The notes below the pieces were generated by a model, which worked only from the letters and a program-made list of their open reading frames with translations, searched no databases and had not been told where the DNA came from. 64,000 nt of DNA from Styela clava (Eukaryota), in assembly GCF_964204865.1 (NCBI RefSeq), contig NC_135256.1, forward strand, positions 6,324,001-6,388,000. The letters are read 5' to 3'. Position 1 is the first letter of the stretch, and each line of letters opens with the position of its first letter. This document shows positions 15,887-30,406 of this stretch, piece by piece. Both the position numbers and the translations under genes were made by a program.

Positions 15887-18683
15887 TTAGATTTGTATAT
15901 TCCCACGTTTTCGATCCGCAAGTTGATCATTCAGAAACATACCAAGCCATGTAATCAACACGGCGTGAATGAGAAAATTATCAAAAAAGGCCCAAACTAC
16001 GGCAAGCCTTATTGCAGCACCAACCAACTCAAGAAGAAGTTGTCTATAGAAAACTAATCTGTTTACCGCGATTGCGTGCACTTTTTCAAGCAGTTTATCA
16101 AGCGTTATGTTAAATATAAAATAACTGATAACTTGATAGAAATTGCGGTAGAGAGTCATTGCTAAGATTCCTATTTCAACGATTCGGCAAATGACTACAG
16201 CACTTTCAAGATGAGGTCTCGTGATTAGCATTGATGCTCCCAGGATAATCCAAAACATGAGACTCATTCCATAGAAATACCCAGCTACAAAAACGCATGT
16301 GAAAATGCAGGGTAGTTTTGGTAAATCGTCTCGAAACTTTTTCTGTAAAGAGTAAAACATGTTGTGGAAGCTTGTTTATTTCAGCAGTAGTATTACGTGT
16401 AATAAGTTTTCAACTTCTCATAGATGACCATATGTTTAAACCGAGCTGAGTCAAATGGTGGGATTCAACAAACCCACTCCTAAAATGCCGCACCCCTTTC
16501 TTGTTTTAGATGCCAGACGACCGCAGCAAATACCTAAATACTATCTTTTGATAGAGATTTTGCATTGATACTGTTTACCGTATTGTTCGAAAATATTTTA
16601 ATCGTTTTTAATAAATTTGAATGGTAAGTCATATCACTAATACGATAATCCGTGTCTCAGTCCCACAATGTAGAACAAATCTATTTGATGTCACATTGGT
16701 ATGTAATCTCAGTAGTTTTAATTCCATGTTAAATAATTCCATGAAAATGTTTTATGAGATTGAACCCAACCTGGCGCCATCTATTTTATATTGCATACAA
16801 TACCATTGTCCGCTCATCCTCGCTTTCTTGCATCCTTTCTTCGTTTCTTATGTTTCGAGATAGGTCCAATTCCTGGAATCGTCTCAAAGCTCGCCGAAGA
16901 TTTGTTCCGTGATTTTGTTGTTGTGATCGATAATTTAAATTATCCAATCCTTCCATGGTTATTACAACTTGGCCTTGAACTGACTGAATCGGATTTGTCG
17001 GCGTTGGTGCTGGATTTTTCACTGCCGAACACAAGGGACACCCCCTGAAAGCAAAATAAATCATCAGACCAAATGTTGTAAAGTTCTAGTTTGGTCTGAG
17101 CAAGCATCCTTATATTACCTTTTTTTCTTTCTGTAGTTTCTGGTCACATTCAGCACAAACTGTGTGACCACACAATAAAGCATCGTCGGAATGTAAACGA
17201 AAACACAAACTACATAATTTCGATTGTGGCAATTCATCAATGCTGTTCAAATCCTGTGGACAACGACCTGGACAAGTCAACCGTGCACTGCGCAAAATAA
17301 AATCACAATTAATACAAAAGTTAATATCGGTTAGGAAGGAATAAAGATTTGAAACGTGGACGTACGTACGTTAGTCAGTTATATATAGGATCAACATGAA
17401 GTAATTTCAACTATTACCACCTGTGAAAAAAGGCACAAACTATAATGTAACACTTACTCCGTATTTGTTGATTGCGTTGTGATGCAATCCATGCAGTATG
17501 GTTTTGAACAACATGGCATCAATTTTGAACATTTCAGGAATTGATTGCAACATCCACATCTTAAAGGTTTGGGAAGGTAACGAATATTTTCAAATAAACA
17601 TATTTGTCTGCACTCGTGGCATTTCACGGCTCTGCGAAGAAAATAAGATGTAATCGATATTGACATTTGACACCTGAATCGAATTTGAGCTTCACGACTT
17701 AACCTAAACCCGTTTAAAAGCAGGAACGAGTAGCAAACAAATATTGACAATCAAACTCTGAATTTATGAATCTACCCCCTTACTTTTTGTACTCATTCAT
17801 ACTTTTTTCTTATTCATTCCCTGTGTTTGTGAAATGTGCCGGCTTATTGTAAGATCGTATATGACACGAATGGCGGAAATTATATTTTTATTTAAAAAAA
17901 AGAAGATCAGGAGTTCCAAACCTTCTTTCAAGCGACCACATTAAAAAAATAATTGTAAAATCTCGCAACCCTTGGATATGCGTTGATACTAAACGGCATG
18001 TAGTGGCGTGGTTTTACTTAAAATCAAAATAGATGTTGCCAAGCTTTCACGCTGTGATACTCCTCCCATATACAATTAATATTGAGCAACACTCCTATAC
18101 CAAATATAGAATAAACAGCGAAATTTACTAGAAAAAAAATTTATAATCTTTTGTTGAAAAAAAAAGCGACCAAAATGATTTTTAACTTTGGGTCGCTAAC
18201 CATAGGTTCTCAAACACTAAATCAACAATAAATGTGCCTTTGCGCAGTGTGCTATACCAGTTCACTCATTCATAAGTGTTTTATTATCAATTATATAACC
18301 GATGTTAATATATTTTTTGCATTAGTTCGTGACTTGGCGAGTCGCCGAGAATAACATGGGGTTTTGATTGTTCCCAGCGGATTCGCAATCCCTGGTATAT
18401 GACAAAGGCAATACATGTAGTTTCAAATCAAAGCTAACAATGGGAATGTTCACAGCGTTCTACCAAAATGTAAAAGTCAATGATTGAATGACGAATAGCG
18501 GTATGTTAATAAAACTACTTACAAATATGCGCGATAATTATATAACATCACTCACCTTCCTTCGCCACGTTGTGTCATGCTGAGTATACAATTCATACAA
18601 GCAACATGCCAGCATGGTAGCATTCTTAAATCTTTTTTGTTTTCAAGGCAAATAGGACAGGTTTCGTTTTGTATTTGTTCCAT
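15887..18683 (-). pseudogene. Triple-RING / multi-TM gene copy A (1-bp frameshift; pseudogene or sequencing error)
   Basis: Exons 18683-18556 (MEQIQNETCPICLENKKDLRMLPCWHVACMNC...), 17631-17458, 17287-17119, 17044-16804, 16342-15887. Exon 3 is 169 nt (A7 run) versus 168 nt (A6) in copy B, which shifts the frame before the last CxxC and the TM domain. About 388 aa if corrected. Confidence 0.75.
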
Positions 18684-29200: not shown

Positions 29201-30406
29201 AATGCCAGTTATAATCACAAAGCATTGTGTTTCATTTTCTATATTATTGCTTATTAAATATTATATCAGTAATTCCAATTCTACTACTTTAAAACATTTT
29301 GTCTGATGATTATTATTGGTTCCAGGGGGTGTCCCTTGTGTTCGGCAGTAAAAAGTCCAGCGCCGATACCGACGGATCCAATTCAGCCAGTCCAAGGCCA
29401 AATTGAAATAACCATGGAAGGATTGGAAAATTCAAATTATCGACCACTTCAACAAAATCGTATGGGATTTTTCGTTCCTCCGCACACACTTAGCCTAATT
29501 CAACAATTGAACCGATCTCATGATCATTCCATGGTAAGTTGAAACCCTATGTCAGTGGTTTTCAACCGGGATTCGGCTGCACCACATCAGGGTATCGCCA
29601 TTACGTGGATTCCGCAAGTTTTCATCAAATTCAATATTCTATATTAAATAATTGATTTGATTATATAATCAAATACCCATCGAGTGTGCCCCTATTATTT
29701 AACTTGATAAACTTCACAGAACATCTTGTTTCACCAGTTTCAGGTTTGCTTTCATATGTGGTTTATGCGATTCAGATAATAAAAAAAAACGATTAAACTA
29801 TTGCAAAGGGGTTCCCAGAGCATCTAGAGTCTAGAATGTTTCAATGGGGTTCTACGTCATCGAAAAGGTCCGAAACTACTGCACTATATATATACACTCA
29901 AAACTACTGCTGAAATAAATTTACTTTCAAAACAATTTTTTATGTTTTTTCAGATACAGGATCGGGACGAATTGTTAAAAGCATTCTGCATTTACACATG
30001 CGCCTTTGTAGCTGTGTATTTCTATGGAATGAGTCTCATGTTTTGGATTATCCTGGGAGCATCAATGCTAGTCACGAGACCTCATCTTCTAACTGCTGCA
30101 CCCATTTGCAACCTCCTTGAAATAGGAATCATGATATTTACTTTCTACAGCAATTTCTATCAATTTATCATTTTTACCATAATTAAAATATTGTTAGTTG
30201 GACTTCTAGAAATAATGTACCGAATCGCGTTTAATGAAATGGCCTTCTATCAAAAACTTCTTCATTCGTGGGTTGGTGCTGTAATAAGGCTTGTCATAGC
30301 TTTGTCCTTTTTTGATGAGTTGTTCGTTCACTCTGTGCTGTCTACATGGCTTGCTTGGATTTTGCAAGATAAAATTGAGTACAATTTACAAAGCATACAA
30401 ATCTAA
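26222..30406 (+). CDS. Triple-RING / multi-TM gene copy C (apparently intact, with internal exon duplication)
   Basis: Exons 26222-26349 (MKKIQDQTCPICLENKEDLRMLPCWHVACMNC), 27153-27326 (AVKCHIC...CGCC...PCCSKLYCVDC), 27861-28028 and/or 28896-29060 (CPGRC...CSLC...CGHTVCAEC in the latter), 29326-29533 (GCPLC), 29954-30406 (hydrophobic domain). All junctions are AG/GT and phase-compatible. About 375-431 aa depending on exon use. Confidence 0.8.
26365..26785 (-). mobile_element. tRNA-derived SINE (interrupted) in RING copy C intron 1
   Basis: B-box GGTTCGAATCCC followed by gagagga..cctcaccgtcgtagggtggttca. Related fragments at 14035-14157 (+), 49135-49320 (+) and a probable A-box head at 31446-31500 (+). 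Confidence 0.7.
27550..27759 (+). mobile_element. Merlin-like MITE subfamily 2
   Basis: 8-bp TSD GATAATTG; empty site in the duplicated intron at about 28801. Confidence 0.88.
28431..28575 (+). pseudogene. 5'-truncated duplicate of RING exon 2 (pseudo-exon)
   Basis: Near copy of 27182-27326 with GTAAGT donor intact, but it has no phase-2 acceptor and there is an in-frame TAA at 28403. Confidence 0.7.
29553..29881. mobile_element. hAT-type MITE in RING copy C last intron
   Basis: cagtggttttcaacc ... ggtccgaaactactg. Confidence 0.7.

Follow-up and report, generated by a model that had tools for sequence, protein, structure and literature searches.

The 64-kb window analysed here (Styela clava, RefSeq assembly GCF_964204865.1, NC_135256.1, forward strand, positions 6,324,001-6,388,000; coordinates below count from its first letter) contains a cluster of three paralogues of one gene at 15887-30406. 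With an estimated probability of about 0.6, the cluster belongs to a Styela clava family of membrane-anchored multi-RING proteins, most likely RING-type ubiquitin ligases. The copies were delimited by mapping open reading frames (ORFs) and exons and by self-comparison: copy A occupies 15887-18683 and copy B 20654-23083, both on the minus strand, and copy C occupies 26222-30406 on the plus strand; the rest of the window yielded no other exon relics of the family. Five coding exons make up the basic gene: R1, R2 and R3 (RING domains), L (linker) and TM (a hydrophobic, helical membrane domain of about 150 amino acids (aa)). A preliminary description, made from the sequence, had placed a local expansion of an unrecognised family at this locus. 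The paralogues lie exactly there, and no paper or described family was matched, but RefSeq gene models exist for all of the copies. Copy A is LOC120328751, with isoforms X2 (P0001, 332 aa) and X3 (P0009, 191 aa); copy B is LOC144425248 (P0004); and copy C is LOC120328916, with isoform X2 (P0006) and an older isoform, P0008, automatically named 'TRIM59-like'. All family models except P0008 are labelled 'uncharacterized protein'. A literature search found no papers mentioning LOC120328751, LOC144425248 or LOC120328916 and, for similar architectures, nothing relevant except the tandem-RING precedent of PRT1.

RING1 is an ordinary C3HC4 RING with the pattern C-x2-C-x11-C-x-H-x2-C-x2-C-x14-C-x2-C. 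It scores 29-36 bits against Pfam PF00097, for which the gathering cut-off is 21, and aligns to the RINGs of c-Cbl and TRIM proteins in a comparison with PDB entries. RING1 retains the isoleucine of C-x-I-C, a hydrophobic residue at the position of c-Cbl W408 and an arginine after the last cysteine. RING2, with the successive motifs CGCC, PCC, C-x2-C and CPGRC, is best described, as judged by alignment, as RBBP6-like: over its first six ligands it can be aligned, gap-free, to the C4C4 RING of RBBP6 (2yur and 3ztg; expectation value (E) 0.003-0.004), and the exon also aligns to the RAD18 RING (E 0.003-0.007 for the RBBP6 and RAD18 matches together). The closing pair of RING2 is C-x3-C, which becomes C-x2-C when RING3 is skipped. 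RING3 (CSLC, then CGH-x2-C-x2-C, then GCPLC) is again an ordinary C3HC4 RING, forming the second, weaker Pfam RING stretch (residues 125-162 of P0005); among PDB entries RNF141 matches it best, and no basic residue follows its last cysteine. The three RINGs and the polar linker proposed earlier are thus present; the RINGs are matched by Pfam or PDB alignments, the linker is rich in proline and glutamine, and the motifs stand as described, save for a trivial miscount in RING1 (x10 for x11).

Every internal exon straddles a RING border: it opens with the cysteine pair that closes one RING and finishes with the first six ligands of the following one. The internal cassettes are all of phase 2-2 and multiples of three in length: 174 nucleotides (nt) in R2, 168 or 165 nt in R3, and, in copy C, 168 nt in a further RING3 cassette (R3a) and 102 nt in a partial RING2 cassette (R2'). 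The removal or addition of an exon therefore always leaves complete RINGs, and the isoforms with skipped cassettes (P0001, P0002 and P0008) keep the reading frame. The models include the forms R1-L-TM (P0002), R1-R2-L-TM (P0001), R1-R2-R3-L-TM (P0005 and P0007) and R1-R2-R3a-R3-L-TM (P0006). RNA joints in copy C also place R2' between R3a and R3, implying a five-cassette form of about 465 aa; the number of RINGs per form, modelled or seen in RNA, thus ranges from one to five.

Splicing was assessed with RNA-derived contigs of four public runs, aligned to copy C. Several runs together provide GT..AG joints at every predicted border of this copy (26349-27153, 27326-27861, 28028-28474, 28575-28896, 29060-29326 and 29533-29954), the last of which connects the linker exon to the membrane exon. 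Such joints cannot arise from genomic DNA, so copy C is transcribed and spliced. The preliminary description had made its reading depend on transcripts that join the RING exons to the membrane exon; the canonical joints, pooled across contigs, link neighbouring exons from RING1 through the linker to the membrane exon. All copy C exons would be carried on one molecule, the whole transcript being covered by joints pooled across contigs rather than by one contig.

Some contigs from the same runs show other arrangements. In run X6, one contig joins 26349, the end of R1, to 28906 in R3 with 13 letters between; these letters match the start of an A/B-type R3 exon and not that of copy C, so the contig has the look of a transcript from a different copy or allele, without R2, that was aligned to copy C. 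One contig of run X1 jumps back by 4295 bases, from 30500 to 26206, just upstream of the copy C start codon; an assembly artefact, a back-splice or a join related to trans-splicing are possible sources. A region in the R2-R3a intron of copy C (27552-27716) reaches a summed depth of up to about 118,000, compared with 10-50 for the exons, in all four runs and is present in many RNA contigs with differing flanks; its behaviour is that of an interspersed repeat that is transcribed and abundant. Rfam and tRNA scans of 15000-31500, which take in this region, gave no match.

The membrane exon encodes an orphan domain that is most probably embedded in the membrane. Kyte-Doolittle means over 15 residues are at least 1.5 across most of the exon in all five of the sequences compared (copy B was left out), with three to four long hydrophobic stretches, and AlphaFold2 modelling of the exon by itself yields six helices, two short and four long (predicted local distance difference test (pLDDT) 66, predicted template modelling score (pTM) 0.53). 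The preliminary description had given about 140 aa with about six short hydrophobic helices. The exon belongs to no Pfam family, and its profile A2 matched nothing among PDB sequences. Foldseek with the pLDDT-66 model returned nothing at E <= 0.001. VIA-align gave generic helical bundles and membrane proteins of four helices, none of them standing out, at a best Z of 8.8, which is below the tool's own meaningful level for helical bundles. The AlphaFold and Foldseek comparison suggested in the preliminary description, run on the membrane exon alone, thus matched no known fold.

The RING and membrane parts differ in the way they evolve. Ratios of nonsynonymous to synonymous divergence (dN/dS) were estimated for each exon group by the pairwise Nei-Gojobori method (NG86), which is crude and yields non-independent pairs. 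In the RING exons, dN/dS is 0.13-0.30, significantly less than 1 for all pairs apart from A-B (about 1.1), whose members are nearly identical. Values of 0.24-0.85 were obtained for the first 45 codons of the membrane exon and of 0.75-1.92 for the last 100, the highest being that of A versus C (1.92, p = 0.06 against neutrality). Tables of nonsynonymous and synonymous differences (Nd/Sd) differ between RING and membrane parts with p = 0.003-0.03. Synonymous divergence (dS) is alike in both parts, so the contrast lies in amino-acid replacement; gene conversion was rejected as its cause for the same reason. The replacements in the membrane exon are conservative (BLOSUM62 >= 0) in 49-65% of cases. 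The membrane exon is open in five of the six loci known in the genome, copy B stopping eight codons early at a TGA. Between A and C, about 81 replacements multiplied by a stop/nonsynonymous ratio of 0.054 give approximately 4.4 nonsense changes expected without constraint, and none was seen; the membrane domain is therefore needed, though the greater part of its sequence can change freely or is under pressure to do so.

Genome searches with the membrane exon, the linker exon and the profile as queries found six loci in Styela clava: three in the window and, on other contigs, two on C16 and one on C1. The C16 copies are intact and inverted, about 50 kb apart. The C1 copy (L028) is intact but divergent; its five exons follow the order of the other copies, and not one of the 24 zinc ligands has been lost despite saturation at synonymous sites, but its membrane exon is only about 18% identical. 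A further member, P0002 (XP_039250155.1, LOC120327863), is a 219-aa protein with a single RING, a linker and a membrane domain known from an older Styela clava annotation. No close locus for it turned up in this assembly, its membrane exon reaching at best 47-51% identity; either presence/absence variation or the dropping of a scaffold may account for this.

The family has so far been found only in Styela clava, as judged by protein-database searches. The phmmer comparison of the copy A membrane exon with 1.84 billion representatives matched only three proteins, two from Styela clava and a spurious one with repeats, and these included no C1-like protein. In a full-length search with candidates of 183-581 aa, no non-Styela protein scored. 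A homologous-protein search with the membrane exon and a scan of JGI metagenome contigs with profile A2 found nothing, and ESM Atlas searches with the membrane domain gave no usable match. A protein search with the five-sequence profile A2 was blank, but it also missed the known protein P0002 (48% identical) and is thus uninformative. The sensitivity of these searches is limited: the copy A exon missed its own C1 paralogue, and a search in the opposite direction gave matches no better than E 0.003-0.09. The earlier suggestion of a lineage-specific family accords with the lack of detected relatives outside Styela clava, but it is tied to protein databases. No full-length match to a described family emerged from the protein searches. 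Birth-and-death evolution, also suggested earlier, is supported by comparison of the copies: two of the six loci are damaged, cassettes have been duplicated and have decayed in copy C, and copies A and B form a mosaic of identity.

Between copies A and B, identity is 97% along 2.7 kb, introns included, reaching from beyond the last exon up to and including the RING2 exon; further upstream it falls to about 83%. The aligned blocks are 15078-17763 versus 19834-22531 (97%) and 18193-18641 versus 22539-23006 (about 83%). The mosaic suggests a recent gene-conversion tract or a partial re-duplication over an older duplication. Both copies are damaged. The R3 exon of copy A has one extra A in its terminal A-run, absent from all six of the other R3 exons, so that inclusion of RING3 breaks the frame and yields the 191-aa P0009, which is devoid of the membrane part. 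Only the R3-skipping form of copy A (P0001) is in frame; a triple-RING protein with the membrane domain is not encodable in frame. The extra A occupies a homopolymer position and could be an assembly error; the RefSeq models were apparently built on the same assembly. In copy B the 5' half of exon 1 is gone, and with it the start codon and the first cysteine pair of RING1; a CGA>TGA change also lies eight codons ahead of the normal stop. Copy C is the sole intact copy of the three and contains two extra cassettes, the degenerate RING3a (ligand 3 changed from Cys to Gly and ligand 4 from His to Tyr) and the partial RING2'. The triple-RING and membrane architecture first read from the window is real, but copy A is frame-shifted and copy B is damaged.

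According to the preferred reading, that of a membrane-anchored multi-RING ligase, the N-terminal RING array, which has no signal peptide, would face the cytosol. RING1 would be the likeliest unit to recruit the ubiquitin-conjugating enzyme (E2), because it is a canonical C3HC4 RING with the isoleucine and the hydrophobic residue at the E2-contact positions and an arginine after the last cysteine, as in c-Cbl. RING2 (C4C4, RBBP6-like) and RING3 may pair with RING1 or supply more E2 sites and valency. The polar linker of about 75 aa would act as a flexible tether from the array to the C-terminal bundle of about six helices, which would anchor the protein in the membrane and may pick membrane-protein substrates. 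Skipping or duplication of the cassette exons could reset the RING number in whole units.

Several points weigh against this reading. RING2 is unrecognised by Pfam and has the C-x3-C closing pair, and RING3 scores under the Pfam gathering cut-offs for most RING models. A predicted complex of RING1, RING2 and zinc gave no verdict, neither for nor against binding; the AlphaFold2 model of full-length P0005, made with 8 sequences, has a pLDDT of 36 and is uninformative. Membrane spans and orientation are predicted from hydropathy and AlphaFold2, and the family is known here from sequences, RNA contigs and predicted structures. The approximately neutral rate of the last 100 membrane codons fits a mere anchor as readily as it does a module for recognition.

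Among the other readings, one concerns the cluster rather than the family. The chances are about even that the cluster in the window is mostly decaying, A and B being pseudogenes or sources of truncated products, with function residing in copy C and the loci elsewhere. The +1 frameshift in the RING3 exon of copy A, the loss of the 5' half of RING1 and the premature TGA in copy B and the A-B dN/dS of about 1.1 in the RING exons agree with decay, although copy A still yields an in-frame product with two RINGs and the membrane domain by skipping (P0001) and its extra A may stem from the assembly. Such decay is compatible with the ligase explanation rather than opposed to it. A different emphasis would make the membrane bundle the business end of the protein, its fast-evolving C-terminal two-thirds being a diversifying intramembrane recognition surface and the RING array a constant effector, in immune defence, allorecognition or pathogen conflict; MARCH and viral K3/K5 ligases offer a parallel, choosing their targets through their transmembrane helices. 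The rate contrast between the last 100 codons and the RING exons, the Nd/Sd tables, the similarity of dS, which excludes gene conversion as the cause of that contrast, and the tandem expansion with gains and losses point in this direction. No comparison is significantly above 1, the NG86 pairs are crude and non-independent, and the share of conservative replacements is that of helices needing only hydrophobicity; on balance this is an unlikely reading. A bolder combination of ideas appears improbable: an 'adjustable' membrane ligase in which splicing and duplication would set the RING count (one to five) and hence catalytic valency, while the diversifying orphan bundle would give specificity within the bilayer, serving a tunicate-specific surveillance of foreign or altered membrane proteins in immunity or allorecognition.

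Doubts about catalysis lead to another reading, in which the RINGs would be non-catalytic zinc modules for protein contacts or scaffolding and the protein a membrane adaptor. Many RING-like domains are known to have no E3 (ubiquitin ligase) activity, RING2 is atypical and invisible to Pfam, and RING3 has no basic residue after its last cysteine; against these stand the canonical spacing of RING1, its alignment to the active c-Cbl and TRIM RINGs, the retained E2-contact isoleucine and terminal arginine, and the conservation of all ligands across saturated divergence, which leave the adaptor with a low probability. Lastly, the family might have branched off from an already described group of membrane RING proteins (TRIM59/TRIM13-like, RNF5/185, RNF152/182/183/186 or BFAR) and diverged very far, its membrane part having drifted past detection. 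The automatic name of the older RefSeq isoform would suit such an origin, and the searches do miss distant kin, as the C1 paralogue illustrates, but Pfam finds no B-box, coiled-coil, SAM or RING-CH domain, the full-length search returned no non-Styela protein in its size range, and no fold match rises above the generic helical-bundle background. A hidden offshoot of this kind is quite improbable.

The family is of a known kind, the membrane-anchored RING ligase, and its combination of features is not described in anything searched. RNF152/182/183/186, RNF5/185 and TRIM59/TRIM13 have one RING and one or two membrane spans, to which TRIM59 and TRIM13 add a B-box and a coiled coil. They resemble the family in having an N-terminal C3HC4 RING tethered to C-terminal membrane helices (the cytosolic side being predicted for the family), and by analogy the logic is presumably the same, ubiquitination of proteins at a membrane. 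The family differs in having two to five RINGs, an orphan bundle of about six helices and no B-box, and has no sequence similarity to these proteins outside the RING. RBBP6 (PACT/Mpe1) shares with RING2 the spacing of the first six ligands (C-x2-C-x11-CC-x4-C-x2-C); the family has neither a DWNN domain nor a zinc knuckle, its closing pair is C-x3-C, and RBBP6 is nuclear and soluble. By alignment, only the RING subtype appears to be common to the two. In Arabidopsis PRT1 (RING1-RING2-ZZ), an intramolecular RING1-RING2 dimer is required for activity (PMC12370974). The succession of a canonical and a non-canonical RING in one chain makes PRT1 a possible working model, by analogy, for RING1 and RING2; PRT1 differs in being soluble, in coming from a plant and in having a ZZ domain but no membrane part; no homology is claimed.

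Mind bomb proteins (MIB1/2) also have three RINGs in one chain, but these are C-terminal, after MIB/HERC2, ZZ and ankyrin domains, and there is no membrane domain. RNF19A/B, RNF144A/B and RNF217 resemble the family in having several Cys-rich zinc domains followed by C-terminal membrane helices. Assignment to these and other groups was considered and rejected. Pfam scans detected no MIB/HERC2, ZZ or ankyrin domain, and no IBR domain (PF01485) at E <= 1 in P0001, P0002, P0005 and P0006; the second and third domains have RING cross-brace spacing, leaving no RING2/Rcat-type domain as found in RBR ligases. The preliminary description had set Mind bomb apart by its lack of a membrane domain, and the RBR ligases by their IBR domain and catalytic Rcat motif. 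Membership of the TRIM proteins is contradicted by the lack of a zf-B_box match and by the further RINGs and the Pro/Gln-rich linker that follow RING1, and that of the MARCH/RING-CH proteins (PF12906, C4HC3) by the lack of a RINGv match and by a ligand order that is C3HC4 or C4C4.

The combination that no searched source describes consists of two to five tandem RINGs, among them one of RBBP6 type, together with cassette exons and a helical membrane bundle that is an orphan. Membrane-bound ligases of the RING type govern receptor turnover, endoplasmic reticulum quality control and antiviral defence and, to our knowledge, almost all of them carry a single RING. If borne out, the present reading would mean that exon cassettes spanning RING borders can serve to assemble a RING array and to alter its size, that a wholly new membrane domain can be recruited to a ligase, and that the catalytic part can be constrained while the membrane part changes at an approximately neutral rate. 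The family lends itself naturally to studying the role of additional RINGs within a single chain; at present it stands as a well-documented orphan family rather than as the discovery of a mechanism. The exons of the three copies are listed in Table 1.

Table 1. Exons of the three multi-RING gene copies in the window
Feature	Position	Strand	Evidence
Copy A exon 1, start codon and first six RING1 ligands	18556..18683	-	ORF and exon mapping; Pfam zf-C3HC4 35.8 bits (cut-off 21)
Copy A RING2 cassette (174 nt, phase 2-2), RING1 closing Cys pair and first six RING2 ligands	17458..17631	-	P0001 mapping; ungapped match to RBBP6 RING structures 2yur/3ztg, E 0.003-0.004
Copy A RING3 cassette, 169 nt, extra A in 3' A-run shifts frame	17119..17287	-	Alignment of seven RING3 exons
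Copy A linker exon, closing GCPLC pair and about 75 aa, polar, Pro/Gln-rich	16804..17044	-	Exon mapping
Copy A membrane-domain exon, 151 codons and stop	15887..16342	-	Mapping, hydropathy, AlphaFold2
Copy B exon 1 remnant, 5' half (ATG, CPIC) replaced by unrelated sequence	22920..23083	-	Alignment of A/B/C exon 1; P0004 N-terminus
Copy B RING2 cassette exon	22233..22406	-	Exon mapping
Copy B RING3 cassette, 168 nt, intact	21883..22050	-	Mapping, RING3 exon alignment
Copy B linker exon, identical to that of copy A	21568..21808	-	Mapping
Copy B membrane exon, CGA>TGA at 20675-20677, last 8 residues lost	20654..21106	-	Sequence comparison
Copy C exon 1, RING1	26222..26349	+	Mapping; RNA joint 26349-27153
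Copy C RING2 cassette, 174 nt	27153..27326	+	RNA joints, mapping
Copy C RING3a cassette, 168 nt, RING3 duplicate minus ligands 3 and 4	27861..28028	+	RNA joints, RING3 alignment
Copy C RING2' cassette, 102 nt, partial RING2-exon duplicate, used in transcripts	28474..28575	+	RNA joints; isoform P0008
Copy C RING3 cassette, 165 nt	28896..29060	+	RNA joints, mapping, RING3 alignment
Copy C linker exon	29326..29533	+	RNA joints 29060-29326 and 29533-29954
Copy C membrane-domain exon, 150 codons and stop	29954..30406	+	Mapping, RNA joint, hydropathy

Beside the C1 member, approximately 1.5-4.7 kb downstream of its last exon (L028:3079-3823 and 578-1748), there is a long tandem-repeat ORF, in which a motif of about 10 aa keeps recurring, as well as a pair of ORFs of 179 and 209 aa that might be of mobile-element origin.

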